64,000 nucleotides of DNA from Phaeosaccion multiseriatum (taxonomy: Eukaryota > Protista > Ochrophyta, other classes): assembly GCA_965112735.1 (NCBI GenBank), contig OZ218957.1, forward strand, positions 1,488,001 through 1,552,000, given 5' to 3'. The translations under genes and the position numbers were made by a program. Under the pieces are notes generated by a model that was not told the DNA's origin, did no database searches, and saw nothing but the letters and a program-made list of their open reading frames with translations. Positions 10,707 through 61,641 of the stretch are shown here, one piece after another; position 1 is the first letter of the stretch; every line of letters starts with the position of its first letter.

Positions 10707-18465
<7,759 letters not shown>

Positions 18466-19702: not shown

Positions 19703-20800
19703 TACTATTTATCGGACTGACGAAGCTAGTAAGTAAGTTAGTAAGGTACCACCACCGCCAAACACATCGCCCAAGTGCACACACAGCACGGGCGTTTTCG
19801 GAACCCACAGCAATGTTGCAAAAACCAAGAAATTGAAGGTGGCCCAGTGTTTCCTTGTTATTCGCTTCACCAACGATTCGTCCATTGCAAGAACCAAGCT
19901 TCACCGTGGCGAAGATAGGCAGGAGATGAGGCGGACGGCTTCGCGTCACTACATCACCAGTCCCGAGCTATCAGCACCAGCACAAGCTTCTGCCACGCCC
20001 CCCACACGCACGCACGCTCGCAGCGCCTTCCGTCCCCGCCTCTTCTTCTCACTCGCCGCCACCATGCCCTCCTCCAGCACCTCCCACTCGTCCTGCTGCT
20101 TCTCGCCATCCTCGTTACCCCCTCCTCCTCCTGAGCGATAGCGCTGGTAGGCAGACACAAAGCCTCGTATCGTGCTCTCCAGGCTGGTCCCCTTCCTCTT
20201 GGTGCGCACAGCGTAGTAGGGCAGCAGCAACACCTTACTCTGGCCCACAGACACCACCACGCCATTCGACAGCTGCCTATCCTGGTGGCCCCAGCAGGCT
20301 ATGGCAGCGTCGGCAGCAGCATCTTCCAGCTCTCTCCACAGACCATTGGGAAGCTGAATCTCATCCCCGACATGAAGCCCCAGCCTCGCAAGCAAACCTC
20401 CTCCATCCCCATCCTGCTCCGCTGCTTCCTTCCCTTCCTCTTGCCTCTCCCCTCCCTCCACTGAAGGGGGGAACTTCGCCCTCTTCTTTCCTCTCGCATC
20501 GATGTCGGTGGCAGCTCCTCGCTTGGGTTTAGGCGTGCCCTGGGTCATCTTCCCCGTCTGCTCCGCTCCCTCCCTTTTCATTCGAGCATGACGCCAACAC
20601 ATCCCACCAGATCCACCCTGGGCTTGCTTCTCACACCCCTCCACAGTACACCTCTTAGGTATCCTCACAGCTCCATGCCTAGTGTACAATCCTCCCTGTT
20701 GCGACTGCTTCTCACACCCTTCCACAGTACACCTCTTGACCACAGCTCCATGCCTAATGCATAATCCTCCCTGCCTCGACTGCTTCTCACACACCCCATC

Positions 20801-23800
20801 TTTTTTTCTGCTTAAGACAGGGCCACCATGGCAGGGGACGACAGGGGGGCCCCGCGGCCCCCCGGAGCCCAGGAGACACCGGCAAACCTCACAGCAACCC
20901 AGCAGGAGCCACCTATGAGCCGCGATCAGCGGGGGCTCGAAAGAAGGGAGAGACGGGCAGCGGCAGCAGCAATTCGCCAAACACCAGCACGGGAAGGCGT
21001 GCCCACCCCCATCACGGCTCCACCAGCGGCCGCAGCACCCCGCAACACCCTCCCGCAGGACCCACAGCTCCCACCAGCACTCACGGAACCCACAGCAACA
21101 GCAGCGGAAGCCCACCCCCCGCAGCAGCAACCACAACCGATCTCAACGACACGGCAACAAACAGCACCGGCCGCCAGGAGATCTACCACGCCCGCCAGCG
21201 AGACAACAGGCCCTACAACAGCACCACCCCCCACAGCGACCAGCCCAGCACCCATGCAGCCAACCACGAGGCCAAGGGGACGAAGCAGGACCCCCCGAGC
21301 ACGCAGCCCGGAAAGGCCAACCGCCACTTTCCGAGCCTCAGATCCAGCCCAAACCACCAACGCGTCAACTCACAGAAACGCACACGGGATCACAGAGCAA
21401 ATCGTCTCCATCCTCCAAGACGAATACGAAGACACCCACCTCACAGCCACGACCCCCATACGGCAACACCCGAACCTCTTCTTCAACGAACAAGCGCCAG
21501 CATCCGCCAGCCGACGCATCAGCGCTGAGTTCGCAAGCCTAAACCTCACCGCGACGGAACTGACCCACCACAACACGGCCGAGGCCATCGCCGACCTCGT
21601 ACGACCACCCCCCACGACGCACGAGGAAGAGACAGCATCACTCGAAACAGACACGCATGGACACGCACCAACGACATGGAGCAACACCATACGCCACCAG
21701 CGCGACGCGGCGCTCCCGCCTACCAACTCGCACTTCTATATGCCCCTCCTCAGACAAGCTCTAAGGAGCGGAGGCCCCCCCACCACCCCCGGAAGACCAC
21801 ATGGGGGAGGAGATTACCCCCTTGGATGGCAACAGATCGTAGAGGCCTATGCCCACACGCTCGCAGGCCAAGAGATCACCTCCAACGAGTTGGTCAACGA
21901 CTACATCACCGCCTCACGACAGGAGGAACTCATCGCGGTATTACCCGACGTCCAAGCCATCGTTGAGCGCTACGGCCACGCCCTACGCGACCACACCAAC
22001 AACACCACCACCTCCCCCTTCGCCAACACCATGGCCACACCGTGGTGGGCGCCGGGGCAAGCCCTCGCCTTACGCACGAGGCAGGCCCCCCGGGGAACCG
22101 CACCAGGACCGCCAACACCCCCCACCCAAAGTGACACAACCACGCCACAGACGGACGACACCCACAACAACACCACAGCGTACCGCAGGAACATTGACAA
22201 CAACTACATCGCCACGGGAGTCCTCTGCAACTTCGAACAGTGCAATGACACCTTCGTCACGGTCGGCAGGTCCAGAGACCGCCTCAACAGGCACCAGTTG
22301 AGCCACCACCCCAACCGCGGCCGAGAGTGGGAACGATGGATGCGCGAACACCACCCCCAGGCCGCGTCAATCCTGTGGTACCGCGCCAACGGCCCACAGA
22401 GCGGACCACAGAACAGAACGTATCAGCTACGTGACTGTATACGTGGATGCGGCAACCTGGCCCACAGAAACTCCGGCAGATCCCTCCTCAGAAGCTTCCC
22501 GCAAGCAGGCCTACGGCAGCCCATATGCCACACATGCATACGAGCATACGAAGCAGCACACCTCCCGGCATCGTCAACCATCCCACCACGAGCTCGCAGC
22601 ATGCCCCCACCGACAAGAGCAGGTGGGACAGACACTACACGGGAGCACGACCCGGAGGGAGAAGGGAGAGGAGAGCGAGCGGGACACAGGGGAGGGGGAC
22701 GAGGAGACCGCGACGGAAGAGTAGTAGCAGGGGGGGAGAGGGCGAAAACAGCAGAGGCGGAGGAGAGCGCCCAGCACTGGCACGGGAAGCAGCGGCAGAA
22801 GGAGGGGAAGGGCAAGCAGAGGGAGGAGGTGACGAAGCAGAAGGAGGAGGCGACCCCACCAACAACGAGGAGCTACCCAACTGCCCGGTGTGTATGGAAC
22901 CGCTCACTGGCCAAGCACAAGTCGCCATGCACGAAGACGAACATCACGTGCACAACCACTGCGCATTGGGAGTCATGAGCACGTACCCCAACCGCAACGA
23001 CCACCTCTGCCCCTACTGCCGCAACCCCTGCTACCGGCACACGATCGAGCAGGCCATCACAGCACAAGGAGGGAGAGCTATGGGCCGCGCAAGGGATCGC
23101 CTAGCGAGGGAGCGCAGAGAGTCGCATCAGCAGCACGCGCAGGCCAGCCAAGGACGGCGCCGCCAGTCCCAGCCACCCCCCACCACCCGACACACACCCC
23201 CACCCCAACCTACCGCCCCCCCAGCCCCGATATGCTGCATATGCATGTCTGACGCGGACCCCCCTTTCATCGCACCAACCACGGAGTGGCCAGTACGCAC
23301 CCGACGCTGCCAACACACCGTTCACCCCGCGTGCCTCCTTCACCACCTGAACGACCAAGCCACACTGAGGAGAGCCAACCAGCAGCCCGTCATACCACCA
23401 GGCAACCTCCCCTGCCCCGCGCAAGGCTGCATGGCTGGCTACCAAGCTCAACGAGCCATCCCCGCCCTCAGGACCATCCTCACCCAAGGCAACGCAGCAT
23501 CGGCCTACCAAGGCCCCCTCAACGACCTCGAGAACGCCTATCTAGGCCCAGACCCAAACGAGGACCCGTCGCGTACGGCAACGCCCCAGCACACGACAGC
23601 AACGGCCAGGCTCAACCCGTACCAACCCACCACCCCCACGGGCAGAGGAGGAGGGCGAGGGCACGCGGAAGGAGGAGGAGGAGGAGGAGGAGCAATCGCA
23701 GCAGCGCCAAGTGGAGTAGAAGGACGAAGAGGAGGACGAGGGAGGGGGGAAGGAAACGGACAAGGAGCAGCAGCAGAGAGGGGACCTCAGAGAGAAAGGG

Positions 23801-26800
23801 CAGGGGGAGATAGCACACGCACGCAAGGAACCACAGCAGCAGCAGCGAGACGAGGGGGAGGAGGACGGAGCAGAGGCCAAGGAGGTAGCGGCGGGGACGG
23901 AGGGGACGGAGAAGGGCCAGCCAACGACGATACACCCGAGGAAGGATGGCCCATGCAGCACCCAAACGTCCTCCGCCTAGGGGCCCTGGACCCGCAGGGT
24001 ACCATCCTCTCAACACTCGTGTTTGAGACAGTAGCGCAGTGCAACCCCCGCCACGTAAGCTTGATTATCAGCTTACAGCAAAGAGCGCTCAACAACTGGA
24101 ACAGGGCGCTGAGGGCCCACAAGAACGGCCCCACCGACGCCACCCTCCACACCCTTCTGGCATGGGATGTCTTCCACCACCTCCTCCCTGCCATGCTCTT
24201 CTCTAAAGACGGAGCCTACAGCCGCCAGCAGCGGATACAGATGGTCCTCGACCTCGACATCGCCCCACTCGCACAAGCAGCGATAGCCACAGCACACGCA
24301 CGCCGCCCACCACCCCCAGCACAGGCACAGACAGAGGAGCGACGGAGAGAAACCTGCGCCCACCTGCTCACCAAACCCGGAGGCCTGCACAAGGCCGCGG
24401 CGAGGCTCAGCACAAAGAGCAGAGACGGCCACCTCCCTCCCACACACGAGACCTTTCGACGCCTCCAGCAAGCGCACGTCGACGAGAGCCTCGAAGAGAT
24501 CAACACAGCAGCAACAGCAGCCAGGGAGTACGCCAGAACCCAGGTGCAGGAGCACCCCGAGAATGGCAACGACGTCACCAGAGAGGAGATCAGCACAGCC
24601 ATGCTGCTGACCTACCGGAGGGTCAACTACTGGAAGGGCCAAGGAGCAGACGGGCGCAGGGCGAGCCACGTCAAGTACCCCCGGACAGCCCCCAGGAGTA
24701 CGCAATCGTGGAGGCTCTGACTGACACCTACGAGCTGCTCCGAACGGGGGACACTCCACTGCCTCCACAGCTCGCCAAACGGTGGTTCAGCACCAGCGCC
24801 GCAGCCCTCGGCGAGAAAGCGCGTCCTGTGACATCCCCCAACCTCTACCGCAGCCTCGTGGAGAGCTGTCACATGAAGCTCATCGCGGACAGGGTGGGCC
24901 CAGAGCTCAGAAGCGCAGGACAGCTAGCGGTAGCGGTCAGAGGCGGAGGGGAAACACACGCCGCAGCAGCCCAGCTAGCGCACGATGCCGGCAAAACCGT
25001 CGTGCTGCATGACATCACCAAGGCCTACACCCGCGTGTCGCGTGCCAGAGGCGTCCTAGCCTCAGGCGCACTCCCTACCATCGACCCAGCAGGCATCAAC
25101 TACGCCATCGCCAGCCTCTCCCACGCCTCCGCCCACAACGCCCTCACACCAGACGGCACCCAGACCATCCACCAGAGCTCCGGAGTCAACCAAGGAGCAC
25201 CAGAAGGGCCTCTCATGTTCGCAGCCGCCATCCACCCAGTGCTGAAAGTTCAGAACACAGCCGACACCGCAGCGAACCGCCCCACCATCTCCGCCTACGC
25301 AGACGACCTCATGGACCAGCTGGAACCCGACGCACCCCTACAGACCTACGCCCCACGCCATGCCCATCTCCAAGCCCAATTCCGAGGCTTGGGCCTCGAG
25401 TTCAACGAGAGGAAAACGGTTTACCTCATGGGCAAAGGCAAACAGCCAACACAGGCTGACAGGGACCACGCCCAACGGCAGGGCGCCACACTTGCCACCG
25501 AGGGTACCGTGGTAGCCGGCATCCCCGTCGGCACAGAGGAGTACATCGAAGAGTACCTCCGCAACATCCTCGGCCAAGAAGACCCCAGGGGCTACCTCCA
25601 ACTCGCCAAACACTGCAGCGAGTGGGACAACACCCAGGCGGCCACCCTCGTCCTCCTCCAATGCCTCCCAGCCAGGCTCACACACCTGGCGAGAGCCATT
25701 GACCCCTCCATCTTCCGACGCGCCCTCGGCAGCAGGGCAGACCGCACCAACAGGGCGACACTGGCCCACATCATGCGACTCCCCGATGCCCCCCCTCTGG
25801 AGCAGGCCGCAGATGCACAAGAGGAGCCATGGACGGAGACACAGCGCCTACAAATGCATACGGCACGGCGCTTCGGCGGCCTCGGCCTCACCAGCCTCCA
25901 CGACATCGCCCCAGCAGCATACCTTGGCAACACGATGCTCACCCTCCCCCCCCTGCTCAGCCGCACCGCACGCCGGGAAGGCTCCCAAGAGAGCGCCCTA
26001 CCGGACCAGCTGTTCACCAACGGAGCCCTCAAGAGCGTCGCCGACAGCGTCAACCTCCTGCACGAGGAGGGGGTCCCTGAGGCCCCCCTCATCCAAGCAG
26101 TGGGTCAGGCACAGTTCGACGAGGCCCGCTCACGCGTACTCGAGCCGCCTGACCACCAAGCCCAAGACACAGCGCGACGCAACGTGCGCAGGAGCCATCA
26201 GGCAGGCCGTCAACCGACCCACGGCGTCCAGAAGGCCCTCACCACCTTCATCCACAAACGCCGCCATGAGGAGCTGACGCAGAGCATCGCCACCATCGAC
26301 GTCACACCGGCAGAGGCACAGAGGGGAGAGGAGACACAGGAAATGGCAACAGCCCGACTCCACTCACAGCGAGGAAGGGGCGCCATGGCCTTCCTCGGAG
26401 CGCTCCCCCACGGCCACAACACCATGGCCCCCGCAGAATGGACCATGGCCCTTCGTCGCAACCTCGGTGTCAACACGCCATACGCGGACCCGCCCCCACC
26501 CTGCCTCGGCACAGGCTGCGCCCGCACGGCAAGCACCACCCACGCCACCATCTGCCCCCGCACCGGCCTCCACAACCACACACACCACCTCCTCGTCAAG
26601 GCCTTCGGGAGGATGATGCACAGCGTGGGCATTGGAGGAGCACGTGTAGAGGACCAGACCTGCTTCGACGGCCCCACGGGCACCCGAGCAGGCCGAGACC
26701 TACGCATGGATCTGACCTATCCCGCAGGTAGCTTCCCGGGAGCGGACGCACCCCTGCGGAGAAACCTCCTCTGCGACATCACCGTCACCAACCCCACCGC

Positions 26801-27524
26801 CCCCACCCACGTGGGACGGGCCTCCACCACGCCAGGCCACGCAGCAGCCGCCGCCGAAGAGCGCAAGCGCATTCACTACCTGGGCAGTTTTCTGCCCGGG
26901 ACTTCAACCCTGAAGTGCATTGCAATCGAGACGTACGGCAGACTGGGCCACCAAACGGACGAGCTCATCGAGGCGATGGCCATCCACAAGGCATCAAGAG
27001 GGCTCGGCCCCGCAGCGGCGGCAGCCACGGGCCCCATCAAGGGCCTCCTGCGCCAACAACTGTCCCTCGCCCTTCAACGCGCCCTCTCACAGCGGGAGAT
27101 CAGGTATGGCACCCTCCTTCGAGCCACGATGACGCAGCACGAAGCAGCAGAAACCCTCGACTGGGGGCTCATGGGAGCCATCGACGGAGCGGCCGCCTGA
27201 GGAGCAGGAGTACACCAGCCAGCAGACAGCGAGACCATCAGCACACAGCATAGCAACCACAGTTAGTCACGCCTTGTCACCCGCACCACCCACAGTAGGA
27301 TAGTTCACATATCACCTCCACCACCTCACTCCTTCCCACACCCCTTCATCTCCTCCTCCCCCCCTCACTCCCTTCCCATTCCCCATTATCCTCTACTCTA
27401 CCACCCTTACCATCCTCTTCCCCTCCACATCACGCTCCATCAATACCACACATACACGCATCTACACATGGTTACAACTTACCTCGAGCGCTCCAATACT
27501 GAGCCCATAAGCTCTAATATACAT
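20801..27524 (+). mobile_element. Non-LTR retrotransposon, CRE-clade-like (RT + RLE), insertion 1, full length (~6.7 kb)
   Basis: 5' end T7-CTGCTTAAGACAGGGCCACC-ATG; 3' end CCCATAAGCTCTAATATACAT; CTCACAC on both flanks. ORF 20828-27200 has two 1-nt frameshifts (~22737, ~24680). Confidence 0.93.
20828..27200 (+). pseudogene. Retrotransposon polyprotein (C2H2/C4 zinc fingers, 2 RING, RT, RLE), frameshifted
   Basis: ORFs 20828-22978, 22447-24720 and 24708-27200 together reproduce the 55033-61419 protein. RT motifs QLAVAVRGGGE, HDITKAY, GVNQGAPEGPLMF, AYADD, RFGGLGL. Confidence 0.9.
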
Positions 27525-27610
27525 CTCACACCCCTCCACAGTACACATCTTTCTCACAGCTCCGTGCCTCTTGCATAATCCTCCCTGCTGTGACTGCTTC
27601 TCACACCCCT

Positions 27611-30600
27611 ACCACCCCCACGGGCAGAGGAGGAGGGCGAGGGCACGCGGAAGGAGGAGGAGGAGGAGGAGGAGGAGGAGGAGCAATCGCAGCAGCGCCA
27701 AGTGGAGTAGAAGGAGGAAGAGGAGGACGAGGGAGGGGGGAAGGAAACGGACAAGGAGCAGCAGCAGAGAGGGGACCTCAGAGAGAAAGGGCAGGGGGAG
27801 ATAGCACACGCACGCAAGGAACCACAGCAGCAGCAGCGAGACGAGGGGGAGGAGGACGGAGCAGAGGCCAAGGAGGTAGCGGCGGGGACGGAGGGGACGG
27901 AGAAGGGCCAGCCAACGACGATACACCCGAGGAAGGATGGCCCATGCAGCACCCAAACGTCCTCCGCCTAGGGGCCCTGGACCCGCAGGGTACCATCCTC
28001 TCAACACTCGTGTTTGAGACAGTAGCGCAGTGCAACCCCCGCCACGTCAGCTCGATTATCAGCTTACAGCAAAGAGCGCTCAACAACTGGAACAGGGCGC
28101 TGAGGGCCCACAAGAACGGCCCCACCGACGCCACCCTCCACACCCTTCTGGCATGGGATGTCTTCCACCACCTCCTCCCTGCCATGCTCTTCTCTAAAGA
28201 CGGAGCCTACAGCCGCCAGCAGCGGATACAGATGGTCCTCGACCTCGACATCGCCCCACTCGCACAAGCAGCGATAGCCACAGCACACGCACGCCGCCCA
28301 CCACCCCCAGCACAGGCACAGACAGAGGAGCGACGGAGAGAAACCTGCGCCCACCTGCTCACCAAACCCGGAGGCCTGCACAAGGCCGCGGCGAGGCTCA
28401 GCACAAAGAGCAGAGACGGCCACCTCCCTCCCACACACGAGACCTTTAGACGCCTCCAGCAAGCGCACGTCGACGAGAGCCTCGAAGAGATCAACACAGC
28501 AGCAGCAGCAGCCAGGGAGTACGCCAGAACCCAGGTGCAGGAGCACCCCGAGAATGGCAACGACGTCACCAGAGAGGAGATCAGCACAGCCATGCTGCTG
28601 ACCTACCGGAGGGTCAACTTCTGGAAGGGCCAAGGAGCAGACGGGCGCAGGGCGAGCCACGTCAAGTACCCCCGGACAGCCCCCAGGAGTACGCAATCGT
28701 GGAGGCTCTGACTGACACCTACGAGCTGCTCCGAACGGGGGACACTCCACTGCCTCCACAGCTCGCCAAACGGTGGTTCAGCACCAGCGCCGCAGCCCTC
28801 GGCGAGAAAGCGCGTCCTGTGACATCCCCCAACCTCTACCGCAGCCTCGTGGAGAGCTGTCACATGAAGCTCATCGCGGACAGGGTGGGCCCAGAGCTCA
28901 GAAGCGCAGGACAGCTAGCGGTAGCGGTCAGAGGCGGAGGGGAAACACACGCCGCAGCAGCCCAGCTAGCGCACGATGCCGGCAAAACCGTCGTGCTGCA
29001 TGACATCACCAAGGCCTACACCCGCGTGTCGCGTGCCAGAGGCGTCCTAGCCTCAGGAGCACTCCCTACCATCGACCCAGCAGGCATCAACTACGCCATC
29101 GCCAGCCTCTCCCACGCCTCCGCCCACAACGCCCTCACACCAGACGGCACCCAGACCATCCACCAGAGCTCCGGAGTCAACCAAGGAGCACCAGAAGGGC
29201 CTCTCATGTTCGCAGCCGCCATCCACCCAGTGCTGAAAGTTCAGAACACAGCCGACACCGCAGCGAACCGCCCCACCATCTCCGCCTACGCAGACGACCT
29301 CATGGACCAGCTGGAACCCGACGCACCCCTACAGACCTACGCCCCACGCCATGCCCATCTCCAAGCCCAATTCCGAGGCTTGGGCCTCGAGTTCAACGAG
29401 AGGAAAACGGTTTACCTCATGGGCAAAGGCAAGCAGCCAACACAGGCTGACAGGGACCACGCCCAACGGCAGGGCGCCACACTTGCCACCGAGGGTACCG
29501 TGGTAGCCGGCATCCCCGTCGGCACGGAGGAGTACATCGAAGAGTACCTCCGCAACATCCTCGGCCAAGAAGACCCCAGGGGCTACCTCCAACTCGCCAA
29601 ACACTGCAGCGAGTGGGACAACACCCAGGCGGCCACCCTCGTCCTCCTCCAATGCCTCCCAGCCAGGCTCACACACCTGGCGAGAGCCATTGACCCCTCC
29701 ATCTTCCGACGCGCCCTCGGCAGCAGGGCAGACCGCACCAACAGAGCGACAATGGCCCACATCATGCGACTCCCCGATGCCCCCCTCTGGAGCAGGCCGC
29801 AGATGCACAAGAGGAGCCATGGACGGAGACACAGCGCCTACAAATGCATACGGCACGGCGCTTCGGCGGCCTCGGCCTCACCAGCCTCCACGACATCGCC
29901 CCAGCAGCATACCTTGGCAACAAGATGCTCACCCTCCCCCCCTGCTCAGCCGCACCGCACGCCGGGAAGGCTCCCAAGAGAGCGCCCTACCGGACCAGCT
30001 GTTCACCAACGGAGCCCTCAAGAGCGTCGCCGACAGCGTCAACCTCCTGCACGAGGAGGGGGTCCCTGAGGCCCCCTCATCCAAGCAGTGGGTCAGGCAC
30101 AGTTCGACGAGGCCCGCTCACGCGTACTCGAGCCGCCTGACCACCAAGCCCAGGACACAGCGCGACGCAACGTGCGCAGGAGCCATCAGGCAGGCCGTCA
30201 ACCGACCCACGGCGTCCAGAAGGCCCTCACCACCTTCATCCACAAACGCCGCCATGAGGAGCTGACGCAGAGCATCGCCACCATCGACGTCACACCGGCA
30301 GAGGCACAGAGGGGAGAGGAGACACAGGAAATGGCAACAGCCCGACTCCACTCACAGCGAGGAAGGGGCGCCATGGCCTTCCTCGGAGCGCTCCCCCACG
30401 GCCACAACACCATGGCCCCCGCAGAATGGACCATGGCCCTTCGTCGCAACCTCGGTGTCAACACGCCATACGCGGACCCGCCCCCACCCTGCCTTGGCAC
30501 AGGCTGCGCCCGCACGGCAAGCACTACCCACGCCACCATCTGCCCCCGCACCGGCCTCCACAACCACACACACCACCTCCTCGTCAAGGCCTTCGGGAGG

Positions 30601-31512
30601 ATGATGCACAGCGTGGGCATTGGAGGAGCACGTGTAGAGGACCAGACCTGCTTCGACGGCCCCACGGGCACCCGAGCAGGCCGAGACCTACGCATGGACC
30701 TGACCTATCCCGCAGGTAGCTTCCCGGGAGCGGACGCACCCCTGCGGAGAAACCTCCTCTGCGACATCACCGTCACCAACCCCACCGCCCCCACTCACGT
30801 GGGACGGGCCTCCACCACGCCAGGCCACGCAGCAGCCGCCGCCGAAGAACGCAAGCGCACCCACTACCTGGGCAGTTTTCTGCCCGGGACTTCAACCCTG
30901 AAGTGCATTGCAATCGAGACGTACGGCAGACTGGGCCACCAAACGGACGAGCTCATCGAGGCGATGGCCATCCACAAGGCATCAAGAGGGCTCGGCCCCG
31001 CAGCGGCGGCAGCCACGGGCCCCATCAAGGGCCTCCTGCGCCAACAACTGTCCCTCGCCCTTCAACGCGCCCTCTCACAGCGGGAGATCAGGTATGGCAC
31101 CCTCCTTCGAGCCACCATGACGCAGCACGAAGCAGCAGAAACCCTCGACTGGGGGCTCATGGGAGCCATCGACGGAGCGGCCGCCTGAGGAGCAGGAGTA
31201 CACCAGCCAGCAGACAGCGAGACCATCAGCACACAGCATAGCAACCACAGTTAGTCACGCCTTGTCACCCGCACCACCCACAGTAGGCTAGTTCACATAT
31301 CACCTCCACCACCTCACTCCTTCCCACACCCCTTCATCTCCTCCTCCCCCCTTCACTCCCTTCCCATTCCCCATTATCCTCTACTCTACCACCCTTACCA
31401 TCCTCTTCCCCTCCACCTCACGCTCCATCAATACCACACATACACGCATCTACATATGGTTACAACTTACCTCGAGCGCTCCAATACTGAGCCCATAAGC
31501 TCTAATATACAT
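27611..31512 (+). mobile_element. Retrotransposon insertion 2, 5'-truncated (~3.9 kb)
   Basis: Starts mid-ORF; canonical 3' end; 11-bp TSD CTCACACCCCT; several 1-nt frameshifts in C-runs. Confidence 0.92.
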
Positions 31513-35750: not shown

Positions 35751-35760
35751 CTCACACCCC

Positions 35761-37263: not shown

Positions 37264-37350
37264 CTCACACCCCTCCACAGTACAAGTCATGACCACAGCT
37301 CCATGCCTAATGCACAATCCTCCCTGCTTCGACTGCTTCTCACACTATCC

Positions 37351-38768: not shown

Positions 38769-38775
38769 CTCACAC

Positions 38776-38922: not shown

Positions 38923-38932
38923 CTCACACCCC

Positions 38933-42695: not shown

Positions 42696-42701
42696 CTATA
42701 T

Positions 42702-45686: not shown

Positions 45687-45707
45687 CCCATAAGCTCTAA
45701 TATACTT
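45687..45707 (+). mobile_element. Retrotransposon insertion 12, a minimal ~21-bp 3'-terminal fragment
   Basis: CCCATAAGCTCTAATATACTT between two CTCACACA copies. Confidence 0.75.
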
Positions 45708-45727
45708 CTCACACACCACACCCCATC

Positions 45728-51700: not shown

Positions 51701-52451
51701 CGACATCACCGTCACCAACCCCACCGCCCCCACCCACGTGGGACGGGCCTCCACCACGCCAGGCCACGCAGCAGCCGCCGCCGAAGAGCGCAAGCGCATT
51801 CACTACCTGGGCAGTTTTCTGCCCGGGACTTCAACCCTGAAGTGCATTGCAATCGAGACGTACGGCAGACTGGGCCACCAAACGGACGAGCTCATCGAGG
51901 CGATGGCCATCCACAAGGCATCAAGAGGGCTCGGCCCCGCAGCGGCGGCAGCCACGGGCCCCATCAAGGGCCTCCTGCGCCAACAACTGTCCCTCGCCCT
52001 TCAACGCGCCCTCTCACAGCGGGAGATCAGGTATGGCACCCTCCTTCGAGCCACGATGACGCAGCACGAAGCAGCAGAAACCCTCGACTGGGGGCTCATG
52101 GGAGCCATCGACGGAGCGGCCGCCTGAGGAGCAGGAGTACACCAGCCAGCAGACAGCGAGACCATCAGCACACAGCATAGCAACCACAGTTAGTCACGCC
52201 TTGTCACCCGCACCACCCACAGTAGGATAGTTCACATATCACCTCCACCACCTCACTCCTTCCCACACCCCTTCATCTCCTCCTCCCCCCCTCACTCCCT
52301 TCCCATTCCCCATTATCCTCTACTCTACCACCCTTACCATCCTCTTCCCCTCCACATCACGCTCCATCAATACCACACATACACGCATCTACACATGGTT
52401 ACAACTTACCTCGAGCGCTCCAATACTGAGCCCATAAGCTCTAATATACAT
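45728..52451 (+). mobile_element. Retrotransposon insertion 13, full length; ORF 45755-52127 with two 1-nt frameshifts (~47664, ~48675)
   Basis: T7-CTGCTTAAG 5' end; canonical 3' end; RT and RLE intact in ORF 48213-52127. Confidence 0.93.
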
Positions 52452-52463
52452 CTCACACCCCTC

Positions 52464-53017
52464 ACACTGGGCCACCAAACGGACGAGCTCATCGAGGCGA
52501 TGGCCATCCACAAGGCATCAAGAGGGCTCGGCCCCGCAGCGGCGGCAGCCACGGGCCCCATCAAGGGCCTCCTGCGCCAACAACTGTCCCTCGCCCTTCA
52601 ACGCGCCCTCTCACAGCGGGAGATCAGGTATGGCACCCTCCTTCGAGCCACGATGACGCAGCACGAAGCAGCAGAAACCCTCGACTGGGGGCTCATGGGA
52701 GCCATCGACGGAGCGGCCGCCTGAGGAGCCGGAGTACACCAGCCAGCAGACAGCGAGACCATCAGCACACAGCATAGCAACCACAGTTAGTCACGCCTCA
52801 CATATCACCTCCACCACCTCACTCCTTCCCACACCCCTTCATCTCCTCCTCCCCCCTTCACTCCCTTCCCATTCCCCATTATCCTCTACTCTACCACCCT
52901 TACCATCCTCTTCCCCTCCACATCACGCTCCATCAATACCACACATACACGCATCTACACATGGTTACAACTTACCTCGAGCGCTCCAATACTGAGCCCA
53001 TAAGCTCTAATATACAT
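52464..53017 (+). mobile_element. Retrotransposon insertion 14, 5'-truncated, directly in tandem with insertion 13
   Basis: Separated from insertion 13 only by CTCACACCCCTC; small deletion in the 3' UTR. Confidence 0.9.
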
Positions 53018-53183
53018 CTCACACCCCTCCACAGTACACCTCTTAGGTATCCTCACAGCTCCATGCCTAGTGCATAATCCTCCCTGCTGTGACTGCTTCT
53101 CACACCCCTCCACAGTACACCTCTTGACCACAGCTCCGTGCCTAGTGCACAATCCTCCTTGGATCGACTGATTCTCACACCCC

Positions 53184-53363
53184 TTCATCTCCTCCTCCCC
53201 CCTTCACTCCCTTCCCATTCCCCATTATCCTCTACTCTACCACCCTTACCATCCTCTTCCCCTCCACCTCACGCTCCATCAATACCACACATACACGCAT
53301 CTACACATGGTTACAACTTACCTCGAGCGCTCCAATACTGAGCCCATAAGCTCTAATATACAT
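53184..53363 (+). mobile_element. Retrotransposon insertion 15, 3'-UTR fragment
   Basis: 5' junction falls at the CACACCCC microhomology shared by target and UTR; canonical 3' end. Confidence 0.88.
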
Positions 53364-53447
53364 CTCACACCCCTCCACAGTACACCTCTTGACCACAGCT
53401 CCGTGGCTACTGCACAATCCCCCCTGCTGTTGCTGCTTCTCACACCC

Positions 53448-54383
53448 CTCCTCGTCAAGGCCTTCGGGAGGATGATGCACAGCGTGGGCATTGGAGGAGC
53501 ACGTGTAGAGGACCAGACCTGCTTCGACGGCCCCACGGGCACCCGAGCAGGCCGAGACCTACGCATGGACCTGACCTATCCCGCAGGTAGCTTCCCGGGA
53601 GCGGACGCACCCCTGCGGAGAAACCTCCTCTGCGACATCACCGTCACCAACCCCACCGCCCCCACTCACGTGGGACGGGCCTCCACCACGCCAGGCCACG
53701 CAGCAGCCGCCGCCGAAGAACGCAAGCGCACCCACTACCTGGGCAGTTTTCTGCCCGGGACTTCAACCCTGAAGTGCATTGCAATCGAGACGTACGGCAG
53801 ACTGGGCCACCAAACGGACGAGCTCATCGAGGCGATGGCCATCCACAAGGCATCAAGAGGGCTCGGCCCCGCAGCGGCGGCAGCCACGGGCCCCATCAAG
53901 GGCCTCCTGCGCCAACAACTGTCCCTCGCCCTTCAACGCGCCCTCTCACAGCGGGAGATCAGGTATGGCACCCTCCTTCGAGCCACCATGACGCAGCACG
54001 AAGCAGCAGAAACCCTCGACTGGGGGCTCATGGGAGCCATCGACGGAGCGGCCGCCTGAGGAGCAGGAGTACACCAGCCAGCAGACAGCGAGACCATCAG
54101 CACACAGCATAGCAACCACAGTTAGTCACGCCTTGTCACCCGCACCACCCACAGTAGGCTAGTTCACATATCACCTCCACCACCTCACTCCTTCCCACAC
54201 CCCTTCATCTCCTCCTCCCCCCTTCACTCCCTTCCCATTCCCCATTATCCTCTACTCTACCACCCTTACCATCCTCTTCCCCTCCACCTCACGCTCCATC
54301 AATACCACACATACACGCATCTACACATGGTTACAACTTACCTCGAGCGCTCCAATACTGAGCCCATAAGCTCTAATATACAT
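53448..54383 (+). mobile_element. Retrotransposon insertion 16, 5'-truncated (RLE + UTR)
   Basis: Canonical 3' end; CTCACACCC(CTCC) on both flanks. Confidence 0.9.
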
Positions 54384-54543: not shown

Positions 54544-54916
54544 AACCCTCGACTGGGGGCTCATGGGAGCCATCGACGGAGCGGCCGCCTGAGGAGCAGG
54601 AGTACACCAGCCAGCAGACAGCGAGACCATCAGCACACAGCATAGCAACCACAGTTAGTCACGCCTTATCACCCGCACCACCCACAGTAGGCTAGTTCAC
54701 ATATCACCTCCACCACCTCACTCCTTCCCACACCCCTTCATCTCCTCCTCCCCCCTTCACTCCCTTCCCATTCCCCATTATCCTCTACTCTACCACCCTT
54801 ACCATCCTCTTCCCCTCCACATCACGCTCCATCAATACCACACACACACGCATCTACACATGGTTACAACTTACCTCGAGCGCTCCAATACTGAGCCCAT
54901 AAGCTCTAATCTACAT
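54544..54916 (+). mobile_element. Retrotransposon insertion 17, 5'-truncated
   Basis: 10-bp TSD CTCACACCCC; 3' end variant TAATCTACAT. Confidence 0.9.
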
Positions 54917-55000
54917 CTCACACCCCTCCACAGTACACGTCTTTCTCACAGCTCCGTGCCTAGTGCATAATCCTCCCCGCTGTGACTGCTTCTCACACCC

Positions 55001-58000
55001 TTTTTTTTTTTTCTGCTTAAGACAGGGCCACCATGGAAGGGGACGACAGGGGGGCCACGCGGCCCCCCGGAGCCCAGGAGACACCAGCAAACCTCACAGC
55101 AACCCAGCAGGAGCCACCTATGAGCCGCGATCAGCAGCGGCTCGAAAGAAGGGAGAGACGGGCAGCGGCAGCAGCAATTCGCCAAACACCAGCACGGGAA
55201 GGCGTGCCCACCCCCATCACGGCTCCACCAGCGGCCGCAGCACCCCGCAACACCCTCCCGCAGGACCCACAGCTCCCACCAGCACTCACGGAACCCACAG
55301 CAACAGCAGCGGAAGCCCACCCCCAGCAGCAGCAACCACAACCGATCTCAACGACACGGCAACAAACAGCACCAGCCGCCAGGAGATCTACCACGCCCGC
55401 CAGCGAGACAACAGGCCCTACAACAGCACCACCCCCCACAGCGACCAGCCCAGCACCCATGCAGCCAACCACGAGGCCAAGGGGACGAAGCAGGACCCCC
55501 CGAGCACGCAGCCCGGAAAGGCCAACCGCCACTTTCCGAGCCTCAGATCCAGCCCAAACCACCAACGCGTCAACTCACAGAAACGCACACGGGATCACAG
55601 AGCAAATCGTCTCCATCCTCCAAGACGAATACGAAGACACCCACCTCACAGCCACGACCCCCATACGGCAACACCCGAACCTCTTCTTCAACGAACAAGC
55701 GCCAGCATCCGCCAGCCGACGCATCAGCGCTGAGTTCGCAAGCCTAAACCTCACCGCGACGGAACTGACCCACCACAACACGGCCGAGGCCATCGCCGAC
55801 CTCGTACGACCACCCCCCACGACGCACGAGGAAGAGACAGCATCACTCGAAACAGACACGCATGGACACGCACCAACGACATGGAGCAACACCATACGCC
55901 ACCAGCGCGACGCGGCGCTCCCGCCTACCAACTCGCACTTCTATATGCCCCTCCTCAGACAAGCTCTAAGGAGCGGAGGCCCCCCCACCACCCCCGGAAG
56001 ACCACATGGGGGAGGAGATTACCCCCTTGGATGGCAACAGATCGTGGAGGCCTATGCCCACACGCTCGCAGGCCAAGAGATCACCTCCAACGAGTTGGTC
56101 AACGACTACATCACCGCCTCACGACAGGAGGAACTCATCGCGGTATTACCCGACGTCCAAGCCATCGTTGAGCGCTACGGCCACGCCCTACGCGACCACA
56201 CCAACAACACCACCACCTCCCCCTTCGCCAACACCATGGCCACACCGTGGTGGGCGCCGGGGCAAGCCCTCGCCCTACGCACGAGACAGGCCCCCCGGGG
56301 AACCGCACCAGGACCGCCACCACCCCCCGCCCAAAGCGACGCAACCACACCCAGCCCACCAACACCGGAGGACAACCCCAACAACGCCCGAGTGTACCGA
56401 AGACACCCCGACAATGGAAACATTCAAGGGGGCATCCTCTGCAACTTTGGCGAATGCCACGACACCTTCGTCACGGTAGGCAACACAAGAGACCGCCTCA
56501 TCAGGCACCAGTCGAGCCACCACCCGAACCGCGGCAGAGAGTGGGACCGATGGATGCGCGAACACCACCCCCAGGCCGCGTCAATCCTGTGGTACCGCGC
56601 CAACGGCCCACAGAGCGGACCACAGAATAATACGTACCAGCTCCGGGACTGCACAAGTGGATGCGGCAACCTGGCCCACCGAAACTCCGGCAGATCCTTC
56701 CTTACCCGCTTCCCGCAATCAGGCCTACGACAACCCCTATGCAACGCCTGCATACGAGCACACGAAGCCGCAAGCCTACCAGCACCGCCAACCATCCAAC
56801 GAGCTCGAAGCATGCCCCCACCGACAAGAGCAGGTGGGACAGACACTACACGAGAGCACGACCAGGAGGGAGGAGGGAGAGGAGAGCGAGCGGGACACAG
56901 GGGAGGGGGACGAGGAGACCGCGAAGGAAGAGTAGTAGCAGGGGGGGAAGAGGGCGAAAACAGCAGAGGCGGAGGAGAGCGCCCAGCACTGGCACGGGAA
57001 GCAGCGGCAGAAGGAGGGGAAGGGCAAGCAGCGGGAGGAGGTGACGAAGGAGAAGGAGGAGGCGACCCCACCAACAACGAGGAGCTACCCAACTGCCCGG
57101 TGTGTATGGAACCGCTCACTGGCCAAGCACAAGTCGCCATGCACGAAGGCGAACATCACGTGCACAACCACTGCGCATTGGGAGTCATGAGCAGGTACCC
57201 CAACCGCAACGACCACCTCTGCCCCTACTGCCGCAACCCCTGCTACCGGCACACGATCGAGCAGGCCATCACAGCACAAGGAGGGAGAGCTATGGGCCGC
57301 GCAAGGGATCGCCTAGCGAGGGAGCGCAGAGAGTCGCATCAGCAGCACGCGCAGGCCAGCCAAGGGCGACGCCGCCAGTCCCAGCCACCCCCCACCACCC
57401 GACACACACCCCCACCCCAACCTACCGCCCCCCCAGCCCCGATATGCTGCATATGCATGTCAGACGCGGACCCCCCTTTCATCGCACCAACCACGGAGTG
57501 GCCAGTACGCACCCGACGCTGCCAACACACCGTTCACCCCGCGTGCCTCCTTCACCACCTGAACGACCAAGCCACACTGAGGAGAGCCAACCAGCAGCCC
57601 GTCATACCACCAGGCAACCTCCCCTGCCCCGCGCAAGGCTGCATGGCTGGCTACCAAGCTCAACGAGCCATCCCCGCCCTCAGGACCATCCTCACCCAAG
57701 GCAACGCAGCATCGGCCTACCAAGGCCCCCTCAACGACCTCGAGAACGCCTATCTAGGCCCAGACCCAAACGAGGACCCGTCGCGTACGGCAACGCCCCA
57801 GCACACGACAGCAACGGCCAGGCTCAACCCGTACCAACCCACCACCCCCACGGGCAGAGGAGGAGGGCGAGGGCACGCGGAAGGAGGAGGAGGAGGAGGA
57901 GGAGGAGGAGGAGCAATCGCAGCAGCGCCAAGTGGAGTAGAAGGAGGAAGAGGAGGACGAGGGAGGGGGGAAGGAAACGGACAAGGAGCAGCAGCAGAGA

Positions 58001-61000
58001 GGGGACCTCAGAGAGAAAGGGCAGGGGGAGATAGCACACGCACGCAAGGAACCACAGCAGCAGCAGCGAGACGAGGGGGAGGAGGACGGAGCAGAGGCCA
58101 AGGAGGTAGCGGCGGGGACGGAGGGGACGGAGAAGGGCCAGCCAACGACGATACACCCGAGGAAGGATGGCCCATGCAGCACCCAAACGTCCTCCGCCTA
58201 GGGGCCCTGGACCCGCAGGGTACCATCCTCTCAACACTCGTGTTTGAGACAGTAGCGCAGTGCAACCCCCGCCACGTCAGCTCGATTATCAGCTTACAGC
58301 AAAGAGCGCTCAACAACTGGAACAGGGCGCTGAGGGCCCACAAGAACGGCCCCACCGACGCCACCCTCCACACCCTTCTGGCATGGGATGTCTTCCACCA
58401 CCTCCTCCCTGCCATGCTCTTCTCTAAAGACGGAGCCTACAGCCGCCAGCAGCGGATACAGATGGTCCTCGACCTCGACATCGCCCCACTCGCACAAGCA
58501 GCGATAGCCACAGCACACGCACGCCGCCCACCACCCCCAGCACAGGCACAGACAGAGGAGCGACGGAGAGAAACCTGCGCCCACCTGCTCACCAAACCCG
58601 GAGGCCTGCACAAGGCCGCCGCGAGGCTCAGCACAAAGAGCAGAGACGGCCACCTCCCTCCCACACACGAGACCTTTAGACGCCTCCAGCAAGCGCACGT
58701 CGACGAGAGCCTCGAAGAGATCAACACAGCAGCAGCAGCAGCCAGGGAGTACGCCAGAACCCAGGTGCAGGAGCACCCCGAGAATGGCAACGACGTCACC
58801 AGAGAGGAGATCAGCACAGCCATGCTGCTGACCTACCGGAGGGTCAACTTCTGGAAGGGCCAAGGAGCAGACGGGCGCAGGGCGAGCCACGTCAAGTACC
58901 CCCCGGACAGCCCCCAGGAGTACGCAATCGTGGAGGCTCTGACTGACACCTACGAGCTGCTCCGAACGGGGGACACTCCACTGCCTCCACAGCTCGCCAA
59001 ACGGTGGTTCAGCACCAGCGCCGCAGCCCTCGGCGAGAAAGCGCGTCCTGTGACATCCCCCAACCTCTACCGCAGCCTCGTGGAGAGCTGTCACATGAAG
59101 CTCATCGCGGACAGGGTGGGCCCAGAGCTCAGAAGCGCAGGACAGCTAGCGGTAGCGGTCAGAGGCGGAGGGGAAACACACGCCGCAGCAGCCCAGCTAG
59201 CGCACGATGCCGGCAAAACCGTCGTGCTGCATGACATCACCAAGGCCTACACCCGCGTGTCGCGTGCCAGAGGCGTCCTAGCCTCAGGAGCACTCCCTAC
59301 CATCGACCCAGCAGGCATCAACTACGCCATCGCCAGCCTCTCCCACGCCTCCGCCCACAACGCCCTCACACCAGACGGCACCCAGACCATCCACCAGAGC
59401 TCCGGAGTCAACCAAGGAGCACCAGAAGGGCCTCTCATGTTCGCAGCCGCCATCCACCCAGTGCTGAAAGTTCAGAACACAGCCGACACCGCAGCGAACC
59501 GCCCCACCATCTCCGCCTACGCAGACGACCTCATGGACCAGCTGGAACCCGACGCACCCCTACAGACCTACGCCCCACGCCATGCCCATCTCCAAGCCCA
59601 ATTCCGAGGCTTGGGCCTCGAGTTCAACGAGAGGAAAACGGTTTACCTCATGGGCAAAGGCAAGCAGCCAACACAGGCTGACAGGGACCACGCCCAACGG
59701 CAGGGCGCCACACTTGCCACCGAGGGTACCGTGGTAGCCGGCATCCCCGTCGGCACGGAGGAGTACATCGAAGAGTACCTCCGCAACATCCTCGGCCAAG
59801 AAGACCCCAGGGGCTACCTCCAACTCGCCAAACACTGCAGCGAGTGGGACAACACCCAGGCGGCCACCCTCGTCCTCCTCCAATGCCTCCCAGCCAGGCT
59901 CACACACCTGGCGAGAGCCATTGACCCCTCCATCTTCCGACGCGCCCTCGGCAGCAGGGCAGACCGCACCAACAGAGCGACAATGGCCCACATCATGCGA
60001 CTCCCCGATGCCCCCCTCTGGAGCAGGCCGCAGATGCACAAGAGGAGCCATGGACGGAGACACAGCGCCTACAAATGCATACGGCACGGCGCTTCGGCGG
60101 CCTCGGCCTCACCAGCCTCCACGACATCGCCCCAGCAGCATACCTTGGCAACAAGATGCTCACCCTCCCCCCTGCTCAGCCGCACCGCACGCCGGGAAGG
60201 CTCCCAAGAGAGCGCCCTACCGGACCAGCTGTTCACCAACGGAGCCCTCAAGAGCGTCGCCGACAGCGTCAACCTCCTGCACGAGGAGGGGGTCCCTGAG
60301 GCCCCCCTCATCCAAGCAGTGGGTCAGGCACAGTTCGACGAGGCCCGCTCACGCGTACTCGAGCCGCCTGACCACCAAGCCCAGGACACAGCGCGACGCA
60401 ACGTGCGCAGGAGCCATCAGGCAGGCCGTCAACCGACCCACGGCGTCCAGAAGGCCCTCACCACCTTCATCCACAAACGCCGCCATGAGGAGCTGACGCA
60501 GAGCATCGCCACCATCGACGTCACACCGGCAGAGGCACAGAGGGGAGAGGAGACACAGGAAATGGCAACAGCCCGACTCCACTCACAGCGAGGAAGGGGC
60601 GCCATGGCCTTCCTCGGAGCGCTCCCCCACGGCCACAACACCATGGCCCCCGCAGAATGGACCATGGCCCTTCGTCGCAACCTCGGTGTCAACACGCCAT
60701 ACGCGGACCCGCCCCCACCCTGCCTTGGCACAGGCTGCGCCCGCACGGCAAGCACTACCCACGCCACCATCTGCCCCCGCACCGGCCTCCACAACCACAC
60801 ACACCACCTCCTCGTCAAGGCCTTCGGGAGGATGATGCACAGCGTGGGCATTGGAGGAGCACGTGTAGAGGACCAGACCTGCTTCGACGGCCCCACGGGC
60901 ACCCGAGCAGGCCGAGACCTACGCATGGACCTGACCTATCCCGCAGGTAGCTTCCCGGGAGCGGACGCACCCCTGCGGAGAAACCTCCTCTGCGACATCA

Positions 61001-61641
61001 CCGTCACCAACCCCACCGCCCCCACTCACGTGGGACGGGCCTCCACCACGCCAGGCCACGCAGCAGCCGCCGCCGAAGAACGCAAGCGCACCCACTACCT
61101 GGGCAGTTTTCTGCCCGGGACTTCAACCCTGAAGTGCATTGCAATCGAGACGTACGGCAGACTGGGCCACCAAACGGACGAGCTCATCGAGGCGATGGCC
61201 ATCCACAAGGCATCAAGAGGGCTCGGCCCCGCAGCGGCGGCAGCCACGGGCCCCATCAAGGGCCTCCTGCGCCAACAACTGTCCCTCGCCCTTCAACGCG
61301 CCCTCTCACAGCGGGAGATCAGGTATGGCACCCTCCTTCGAGCCACCATGACGCAGCACGAAGCAGCAGAAACCCTCGACTGGGGGCTCATGGGAGCCAT
61401 CGACGGAGCGGCCGCCTGAGGAGCAGGAGTACACCAGCCAGCAGACAGCGAGACCATCAGCACACAGCATAGCAACCACAGTTAGTCACGCCTTGTCACC
61501 CGCACCACCCACAGTAGGCTAGTTCACATATCACCTCCACCACCTCACTCCTTCCCACACCCCTTCATCTCCTCCTCCCCCCTTCACTCCCTTCCCATTC
61601 CCCATTATCCTCTACTCTACCACCCTTACCATCCTCTTCCC
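55001..61641 (+). mobile_element. Retrotransposon insertion 18, full length; the last ~100 nt of the 3' UTR is displaced by an LTR element
   Basis: T12-CTGCTTAAG 5' end directly after GCTTCTCACACCC; UTR homology stops at 61641, where TGTGCTA begins. Confidence 0.93.
55033..61419 (+). CDS. CRE-clade-like non-LTR polyprotein, 2128 aa: C2H2 finger (~56440-56523), C4 finger (~56650-56751), RING-like 1 (57094-57231), RING-like 2 (57445-57641), RT (YADD at 59518-59529), CCHC knuckle + restriction-like endonuclease (~60721-61300)
   Basis: Continuous ORF. Motifs CNFGEC..LIRHQSSHH, CPVC..HHVHNHC..CPYC, CCIC..CQHTVHPAC..CPAQGC, QLAVAVRGGGE, HDITKAY, GVNQG.P.GPLMF, AYADD, CLGTGC..HATIC, RMDL..CDITV..KRTHY..IETYGRLG. 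A compensating -1/-2 pair in C-runs (~60016, ~60172) puts about 50 aa, including RFGGLGL, out of frame. Confidence 0.9.
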   Translation: MEGDDRGATRPPGAQETPANLTATQQEPPMSRDQQRLERRERRAAAAAIRQTPAREGVPTPITAPPAAAAPRNTLPQDPQLPPALTEPTATAAEAHPQQQQPQPISTTRQQTAPAARRSTTPASETTGPTTAPPPTATSPAPMQPTTRPRGRSRTPRARSPERPTATFRASDPAQTTNASTHRNAHGITEQIVSILQDEYEDTHLTATTPIRQHPNLFFNEQAPASASRRISAEFASLNLTATELTHHNTAEAIADLVRPPPTTHEEETASLETDTHGHAPTTWSNTIRHQRDAALPPTNSHFYMPLLRQALRSGGPPTTPGRPHGGGDYPLGWQQIVEAYAHTLAGQEITSNELVNDYITASRQEELIAVLPDVQAIVERYGHALRDHTNNTTTSPFANTMATPWWAPGQALALRTRQAPRGTAPGPPPPPAQSDATTPSPPTPEDNPNNARVYRRHPDNGNIQGGILCNFGECHDTFVTVGNTRDRLIRHQSSHHPNRGREWDRWMREHHPQAASILWYRANGPQSGPQNNTYQLRDCTSGCGNLAHRNSGRSFLTRFPQSGLRQPLCNACIRAHEAASLPAPPTIQRARSMPPPTRAGGTDTTREHDQEGGGRGERAGHRGGGRGDREGRVVAGGEEGENSRGGGERPALAREAAAEGGEGQAAGGGDEGEGGGDPTNNEELPNCPVCMEPLTGQAQVAMHEGEHHVHNHCALGVMSRYPNRNDHLCPYCRNPCYRHTIEQAITAQGGRAMGRARDRLARERRESHQQHAQASQGRRRQSQPPPTTRHTPPPQPTAPPAPICCICMSDADPPFIAPTTEWPVRTRRCQHTVHPACLLHHLNDQATLRRANQQPVIPPGNLPCPAQGCMAGYQAQRAIPALRTILTQGNAASAYQGPLNDLENAYLGPDPNEDPSRTATPQHTTATARLNPYQPTTPTGRGGGRGHAEGGGGGGGGGGAIAAAPSGVEGGRGGRGRGEGNGQGAAAERGPQRERAGGDSTRTQGTTAAAARRGGGGRSRGQGGSGGDGGDGEGPANDDTPEEGWPMQHPNVLRLGALDPQGTILSTLVFETVAQCNPRHVSSIISLQQRALNNWNRALRAHKNGPTDATLHTLLAWDVFHHLLPAMLFSKDGAYSRQQRIQMVLDLDIAPLAQAAIATAHARRPPPPAQAQTEERRRETCAHLLTKPGGLHKAAARLSTKSRDGHLPPTHETFRRLQQAHVDESLEEINTAAAAAREYARTQVQEHPENGNDVTREEISTAMLLTYRRVNFWKGQGADGRRASHVKYPPDSPQEYAIVEALTDTYELLRTGDTPLPPQLAKRWFSTSAAALGEKARPVTSPNLYRSLVESCHMKLIADRVGPELRSAGQLAVAVRGGGETHAAAAQLAHDAGKTVVLHDITKAYTRVSRARGVLASGALPTIDPAGINYAIASLSHASAHNALTPDGTQTIHQSSGVNQGAPEGPLMFAAAIHPVLKVQNTADTAANRPTISAYADDLMDQLEPDAPLQTYAPRHAHLQAQFRGLGLEFNERKTVYLMGKGKQPTQADRDHAQRQGATLATEGTVVAGIPVGTEEYIEEYLRNILGQEDPRGYLQLAKHCSEWDNTQAATLVLLQCLPARLTHLARAIDPSIFRRALGSRADRTNRATMAHIMRLPDAPLWSRPQMHKRSHGRRHSAYKCIRHGASAASASPASTTSPQQHTLATRCSPSPLLSRTARREGSQESALPDQLFTNGALKSVADSVNLLHEEGVPEAPLIQAVGQAQFDEARSRVLEPPDHQAQDTARRNVRRSHQAGRQPTHGVQKALTTFIHKRRHEELTQSIATIDVTPAEAQRGEETQEMATARLHSQRGRGAMAFLGALPHGHNTMAPAEWTMALRRNLGVNTPYADPPPPCLGTGCARTASTTHATICPRTGLHNHTHHLLVKAFGRMMHSVGIGGARVEDQTCFDGPTGTRAGRDLRMDLTYPAGSFPGADAPLRRNLLCDITVTNPTAPTHVGRASTTPGHAAAAAEERKRTHYLGSFLPGTSTLKCIAIETYGRLGHQTDELIEAMAIHKASRGLGPAAAAATGPIKGLLRQQLSLALQRALSQREIRYGTLLRATMTQHEAAETLDWGLMGAIDGAAA

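Follow-up and report, generated by a model that had tools for sequence, protein, structure and literature searches.

The stretch of Phaeosaccion multiseriatum DNA analysed here, 64,000 nucleotides long and referred to throughout as the window, corresponds to C8:1488001-1552000 of a 67-Mb, 22-contig assembly, and all genome-wide counts given below cover that assembly. The window holds three paralogues of a protein-coding gene family, read from the minus strand, whose tandem zinc-finger units are split by 18 copies of one retrotransposon without long terminal repeats (non-LTR). BLAST of a full-length copy against the window places all 18 copies on the plus strand between 20790 and 61641 (Table 1), in every case antisense to the host gene. 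The only other matches are low-complexity sequence of the GGAGG type at 2638-6810, and no copy lies outside the finger-coding target, as the initial annotation, made from the letters alone, had held. Its counts of 18 insertions, 16 visible 3′ junctions and three paralogues were likewise reproduced by the BLAST map and by a 21-mer count.

The finger units are 75-81 bp long and encode, on the minus strand, C-T-V-E-G-C-E-K-Q-S-x-Q-G-G-L-C-x-R-H-G-A-V. They match the Pfam family Zf_WRKY19 (PF24906): against a cut-off of 27, paralogue 1 scores 52.1 bits (E = 5.6e-14) and two isolated units score 35.4 bits. In the minus-strand reading, the insertion point lies after the GAG of GGG TGT GAG/AAG, that is, between the E and K codons of G-C-E/K, where the slash marks the junction here and below.

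The copies differ widely in length and state. Three are about 6.7 kb long, one is an older copy that is complete at the 5′ end and deleted at the 3′ end, 13 are 5′-truncated with a different break point in each, and one is a 22-bp stub. Full-length copies start with a run of 7-12 T residues followed by CTGCTTAAG, and the 3′ terminus reads ...GCTCTAATATACAT, with no poly(A) tail after it; neither long terminal repeats nor terminal inverted repeats are seen at the element ends. The 3′ junction ...GCTCTAATATACAT/CTCACAC is present in 16 of the 18 copies. The junction-spanning 21-mer GCTCTAATATACATCTCACAC occurs 16 times in the window at up to one mismatch, on the plus strand only, with no occurrence expected from shuffled sequence. 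Successive copies are separated by zero to three mutually different finger units, each 75-81 bp long, or just by the duplicated CTCACAC(CCCT). The common 3′ end, the variable 5′ truncation, a target-site duplication (TSD) and the lack of visible terminal repeats are signatures of target-primed reverse transcription (TPRT). In copies 5 and 8 one 5′ segment is present twice, first inverted and then in direct orientation, an arrangement that resembles the twin-priming 5′ inversions of L1.

The TSDs are 7-13 bp long and all begin at one and the same base. Copy 3 resides in a variant unit and is flanked by CCCACAC on both sides, which identifies the heptamer at the junction as target DNA and not as part of the element. 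The TSD of copy 6 includes 5 nucleotides (nt) of copy 7; therefore copy 6 inserted after copy 7, re-using the site, and its second cut was placed by distance and not by sequence. Re-use is documented for this pair as an insertion into the 5′ copy of a TSD, the reverse direction being indistinguishable. When each element is excised in silico together with one TSD, two paralogues yield open frames of 420 and 408 amino acids (aa), with eight fingers each and the common C-terminal domain; the third paralogue is likewise rebuilt but retains frameshifts of its own. The junction, spacer and excision data thus bear out three statements of the initial annotation, namely a single site and orientation, spacers of zero to three differing units, and finger arrays that reappear once the elements are removed.

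Table 1. Host-gene segments, element copies and the adjoining LTR-type retroelement, in window coordinates.
Feature	Coordinates	Strand	Remarks
Host paralogue 1, C-terminal domain and last fingers	19949..20789	-	Further fingers at 27525-27603, 31513-31669, 32498-32660
Host paralogue 2, C-terminal domain (frameshifted) and last finger	33750..34580	-	Fingers between copies 4-11, up to 41483
Host paralogue 3, C-terminal domain and last fingers	44917..45685	-	Further fingers at 53018-53171, 53364-53440, 54384-54543, 54917-55005
Copy 1, full-length (6.7 kb)	20790..27524	+	TSD CTCACAC; frame broken by two 1-bp deletions
Copy 2, 5′-truncated at element position 2836	27604..31512	+	TSD CTCACACCCCT
Copy 3, 828 bp, variant target with CCCACAC on both sides	31670..32497	+	Candidate empty-site allele in run X5
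Copy 4, 5′-truncated	34581..35750	+	
Copy 5, older, 88-95% identity to the reference copy across pieces; inverted 5′ segment, internal deletion	35760..37263	+	
Copy 6, 12-bp TSD with 5 nt from copy 7	37350..38768	+	
Copy 7, short 3′ fragment	38776..38922	+	
Copy 8, old, 84-90% identity across pieces; inverted 5′ segments	38934..40227	+	
Copy 9, 5′-truncated	40311..40837	+	
Copy 10, 5′-truncated	41081..41404	+	
Copy 11, older (84-89% identity), 5′-complete; 3′ part lost at junction with downstream region of paralogue 3	41484..43944	+	
Stub, 22 bp of element 3′ end	45686..45707	+	
Copy 12, full-length, 99.7% identity to copy 1	45715..52451	+	Two 1-bp frame-breaking deletions, one common to copy 1
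5′-truncated copy, head-to-tail with copy 12, TSD alone between them	52463..53017	+	
5′-truncated copy	53172..53363	+	
5′-truncated copy	53441..54383	+	
5′-truncated copy	54544..54916	+	
Last full-length copy, 3′-terminal 102 bp missing	55006..61641	+	2128-codon open frame at 55033-61419
LTR-type retroelement, separate from the finding	61642..64000	-	Integrase and chromodomain open frame at 61945-63999

The association between element and finger unit extends to the whole assembly. With up to one mismatch allowed, the terminal 21 nt of the element have 115 genomic matches; adding the flank [CG]TC[AG]CAC to the query leaves 98, again with up to one mismatch, and these are on C1, C2, C3, C5, C8 and C13. 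A genome-wide tabulation of the 3′ flanks, as the initial annotation had proposed, therefore finds most copies (98/115) sharing the flank and disposes of the objection that they might mostly lie in unrelated sequence. The flank matches the gene subfamily present locally, reading CTCACAC on C8, CTCGCAC or GTCGCAC on C1, and GTCACAC on C13, and the next 75 nt beyond it vary with the subfamily too. The element proteins encoded across seven contigs are 99-100% identical, some in open frames of more than 2,100 codons. Because the flanks follow the local subfamily while the elements are this closely alike, the finger units are not carried by the element. The 10-mer CTCACACCCC occurs 739 times in the genome, versus 468 for the reversed control, mostly far from finger genes, and only 61 of the 739 occurrences have a finger context of the C8 type. 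Since most occurrences lie outside fingers, yet insertions fall almost all within them, recognition extends beyond the duplicated core.

The host family is large. At least 121 genome matches to the C-terminal domain (~200 aa) lie in tandem clusters on C13, C1, C8 and C2, with a spacing of ~2.3-2.6 kb in the C13 cluster, and at least 909 finger candidates are present in the genome; each of the 150 that were scored exceeds the Pfam cut-off. We sampled 43 paralogues, each fetched with 3.3 kb of upstream DNA. In 21 of these the frame is cut by element DNA, always antisense except for inverted 5′ bits, and the other 22 have an element-free array, most with 4-15 uninterrupted fingers. Insertions are strongly clumped, with 18 in the ~21 units of the three window genes and none in neighbouring paralogues. 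For the C-terminal domain, the ratio of nonsynonymous to synonymous substitution rates (dN/dS) ranges from 0.44 to 0.56 in comparisons between clusters and from 0.3 to 0.8 inside them, values that fit a coding family under modest constraint. C-terminal domains of the subfamilies differ by 30-40%, and the Cys-knuckle codons are the least variable part of the unit. At C13:3145000-3169000, host genes with 4-15 fingers each are arranged head-to-tail and have an identical N-terminal lead-in without a start codon, which suggests an upstream exon. Atlas neighbours of the host protein point weakly to Bacillariophyta and Streptophyta.

The longest open reading frame (ORF) of the element, that of the last full-length copy (Table 1), codes for N-terminal Cys/His motifs, of which one is C2H2-like and two are RING-like, then a reverse transcriptase (RT), and after it a CCHC knuckle and a PD-(D/E)xK nuclease; its N-terminal region is very long, about 1150 aa. 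The RT matches Pfam RVT_1 over aa 1369-1540 (E = 8e-07, 29.4 bits, where the curated cut-off is 29.6), and the YADD motif is invariant in an alignment with 11 homologues. In the C-terminal domain, C59, H72, C76, H86, D128, D150 and Y184 are invariant among 24 sequences, and E108 and K180 nearly so. A structure model of the last 290 aa has a predicted local distance difference test (pLDDT) score of 90 and a predicted template modelling (pTM) score of 0.88. Compared with the PDB, the model is closest to R2 proteins, which take the first seven places; Prp8 and viral cap-snatching PD-(D/E)xK nucleases come next. The RT, the invariant CCHC and PD-(D/E)xK residues and the R2-matching predicted fold together support membership in the restriction-like endonuclease (RLE) class, an early-branching class of non-LTR retrotransposons.

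The N-terminal region is less readily classified. One C-x4-C-x12-H-x4-H pattern was spotted by eye in the translation, where Pfam gives no zf-C2H2 match, and a Pfam scan of the element ORF found no Myb domain. The two RING-like Cys/His clusters before the RT (57094-57641, aa ~687-870) are unusual for a protein of a long interspersed nuclear element (LINE), and their match to Pfam zf-RING_2 is weak (E = 0.0038). All three full-length copies in the window carry frame lesions. Copies 1 and 12 have one 1-bp deletion in common and a second one each. The 2128-codon copy has a -1/-2 deletion pair 156 nt apart (60010..60166) that leaves ~52 codons out of register and removes an ...FGGLGL... motif conserved in distant homologues; the motif is intact in copies 1 (25789-25946) and 12 (50716-50873), whose common deletion lies upstream.

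An exhaustive representative search with the last 979 aa returned 710 relatives at 25-45% identity, all of them unnamed metagenome, Logan or NCBI proteins; word-based protein searches gave just 2 and 4 matches. The one hint towards the CRE-like label of the initial annotation is a cluster of language-model neighbours in which Euglenozoa is the taxon most often recorded. No finger-coding sequence is present in the flanks of five distant relatives, on contigs too short to conclude about an ancient association. The contig of one distant relative ends in a CA-rich tract, which, along with an off-target copy in a (CA)n tract, may point to an ancestor that targeted microsatellites.

Evidence on recent movement comes in part from sequencing runs. 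The initial annotation had proposed a search of reads for empty-site alleles, and one candidate was found: in a second sample of the same organism (run X5, Logan contigs), a contig joins 31661 directly to 32497 and so skips copy 3 exactly, with 8 letters common to both sides of the join and a depth close to single-copy. A search of the assembly that allowed two mismatches did not find this joined sequence. This contig is thus a candidate for the empty-site allele of copy 3. The summed contig depth over the 3′ kilobase of the element (31400-35800 region) is ~500-1000 times that of flanking unique DNA in runs X1 and X2, ~100 times in X3 and ~20-55 times in X5, compared with ~115 3′ ends in the assembly; the high values in X1-X3 could come from RNA, unassembled copies or summed error variants. 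The element is real and has been active recently, as the 99-100% identical proteins on seven contigs, some with long open frames, also indicate, and it may be active at present.

Taken as a whole, these data make it highly probable that the element is an autonomous, site-specific RLE non-LTR retrotransposon that uses a motif repeated within protein-coding genes as its landing pad. The RT, the predicted C-terminal fold and the 98/115 flanks support the initial annotation in its core reading of site specificity, RLE type and a coding landing pad. Five observations weigh against this interpretation. First, ~15% of the 3′ ends lie in other sequence, so that specificity is strong and not absolute; these off-target ends, on C2, C4, C8, C11, C12 and C13, include one in a (CA)n tract, others in unrelated DNA and a divergent ...ATAAAT subfamily on C4, and several of their flanks open with CTC, TTCAC or CACAC. 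Second, segmental duplication accounts for some copies elsewhere, whose flanks are identical, so that not every copy is an independent event. Third, the empty-site contig is limited to 28 letters on its shorter side. Fourth, none of the three full-length window copies encodes an undamaged protein. Fifth, a dN/dS of 0.8 within the C1 cluster indicates that constraint on the host family is modest.

The second of these observations would be expected if a few founder insertions had been amplified by unequal crossing-over, gene conversion or segmental duplication, with no endonuclease choosing the site. The host genes are indeed tandem and recombining, some combinations of element and flank are identical at two places on C8, copies 1 and 12 have a 1-bp deletion in common, and one copy is fused by deletion to the downstream region of a paralogue. 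We nevertheless hold such an origin to be very unlikely as the main cause. The window copies have 16 distinct 5′ ends and TSDs of various lengths, the duplicated variant site flanks copy 3 at either end, and the flanks come from three diverged subfamilies on different contigs, where the elements are 99-100% alike. Furthermore, the C-terminal domains beside copies 1 and 12 are 93% identical at the protein level, versus 99.7% at the nucleotide level for the elements themselves, and congruence of flank tree and element tree was not seen.

Targeting might instead be loose, directed to a short CACAC-type motif or a chromatin state, with insertions elsewhere purged and a redundant gene family tolerating the remainder. 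The openings of the off-target flanks, the copy in a (CA)n tract and the CA-rich contig end of the distant relative are in keeping with this idea, as is the pile-up of insertions in genes already broken (18 in ~21 units, none in other paralogues). In 98 of 115 copies, however, the junction is placed with single-nucleotide accuracy, ~680 further occurrences of the 10-mer are dispersed through the genome, and single-base precision and single orientation cannot come from selection, which renders loose targeting extremely unlikely. Least credible of all is that a finger unit, whole or in part, travels in the element transcript as a terminal repeat or 3′ transduction and that the target is illusory, a prospect raised by the initial annotation: one heptamer follows every 3′ end and read-through transcripts of an inserted copy would hold finger sequence, but the idea is refuted by flanking units that vary by copy to fit the local paralogue type, by the element-free arrays, by the restoration of the frame on excision of element plus one TSD, by the CCCACAC variant around copy 3, and by off-target copies in which the same ...ACAT end is followed directly by unrelated sequence with no finger unit.

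How a site-specific RLE element would use a coding repeat can be set out in four steps. First, the element protein would recognise the DNA of the Zf_WRKY19 finger unit. Second, it would nick the host coding strand directly after GAG in ...GGGGTGTGAG/AAG (G-C-E/K). Third, the element RNA would be copied from that 3′-OH by TPRT. Fourth, the other strand would be cut 7-13 bp away, an event that could account for the variable TSD CTCACAC(CCCTCC), the frequent 5′ truncation and the fixed antisense orientation. The order of the two nicks, and the protein domain that would read the DNA, are points that we infer. The site is near-invariant in hundreds of units because it covers the codons of the metal-binding Cys knuckle, which are under selection at the protein level. 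The tandem family of ~70-120 genes serves as a multicopy landing pad, as ribosomal DNA (rDNA) does for R2; struck genes become pseudogenes and then gather more insertions, and roughly half of the family is intact.

Two further ideas concern the fate of struck genes. Since every insertion is antisense to the host gene, transcription of a struck gene would give antisense element RNA. It is conceivable, if doubtful, that the tandem finger-gene family acts as a trap in which this RNA pairs with transcripts of the element and feeds RNA interference, as proposed for the RHS pseudogenes of trypanosomes. A related but weaker idea is that host transcripts are partly rid of full-length copies by means of a conserved antisense GAG/GTAAGT, 42 nt inside the element 3′ end. 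The antisense reading of the last 42 nt of the element (e.g. 27475-27524) is an open stretch of 14 codons ending in GAG/GTAAGT; one diverged element family keeps GAG/GTGAGT, and another is without the GT. Splicing-out is not supported by the 5′ junctions, since the frame after the putative CAG acceptor is kept in 2 of 4 full-length cases, about as expected by chance, and it is further weakened by the truncated copies, which have no acceptor.

Among known systems, the element resembles R2 and the other site-specific RLE clades (R4, NeSL/Utopia, CRE/SLACS/CZAR and some HERO) in having a single ORF in which the RT is followed by a CCHC motif and a PD-(D/E)xK nuclease. As in R2, a single nucleotide position in a multicopy target is used, the orientation is fixed, 5′ truncation is frequent, and occupied units accumulate dead beside intact ones. 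R2 leaves a small deletion at its insertion site, whereas the new element makes TSDs of 7-13 bp. Its target is a coding repeat and not the R2 site of 28S rDNA, its protein has no Pfam match to Myb, which R2 proteins carry at the N-terminus along with zinc fingers, and the sequence match of that protein to R2 is negligible (E = 0.25). The CRE clade (CRE1/CRE2, SLACS, CZAR, MoTeR, Cnl1) is characterised by an N-terminal C2H2 zinc finger upstream of the RT. Its targets are spliced-leader genes or telomeric repeats, unlike the Zf_WRKY19 coding unit used here. A target within the most conserved codons of a gene, preserved by selection on the protein, is also a feature of homing endonuclease genes and group II introns; these splice out at the RNA or protein level, so that the host gene stays functional, whereas no sign of splicing was found for the present element.

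The catalogued targets of site-specific RLE elements are all non-coding multicopy sequences. The initial annotation took a coding motif as landing pad to be undescribed, a statement that calls for a qualifier. For repeats within coding genes, a full-text literature search on site-specific non-LTR elements turned up nothing comparable. For coding targets as such, the trypanosome RHS family, which holds a hot spot for ingi/RIME, comes closest as a precedent. ingi and L1Tc are elements of the apurinic/apyrimidinic endonuclease (APE) type with merely relative site preference. RHS is a protein-coding multigene family and a hot spot for ingi/RIME, in which more than half of the members are pseudogenes bearing one or more elements and intact copies persist (PMC7563717). 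The finger genes parallel RHS with ingi/RIME and L1Tc in that a large, clustered coding family hosts non-LTR insertions, with broken members beside intact ones. In contrast, RHS has one hot spot per gene, where the finger genes offer a site in every 75-81 bp unit that is used with single-base precision, and the endonuclease class, the gene family and the host lineage are all different.

Some other features of the window are separate from these insertions. The LTR-type retroelement that follows the array gives integrase zinc-binding, rve-core and chromodomain matches; it sits in the 3′ untranslated region of the last copy and removes its final 102 bp. Upstream of the array lie ordinary host genes at 5605-6825 (plus strand) and 15054-15839 (minus strand), which match the tubulin-tyrosine ligase family and an HMGL-like domain.

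Site-specific RLE elements are models for LINE integration and are being developed as safe-harbour gene-insertion tools. The present element extends the "safe-harbour" habit of this class from RNA genes and simple repeats to protein-coding repeats, and it adds a new, well-defined DNA target on which to study how such proteins read DNA. Within one genome it provides a natural system of occupied and empty sites. Together with trypanosome RHS, it makes two independent examples of gene families that live with a resident retrotransposon; and if the trap reading were true, the expansion of the finger-gene family would be part of an arms race, or a truce, between element and host.

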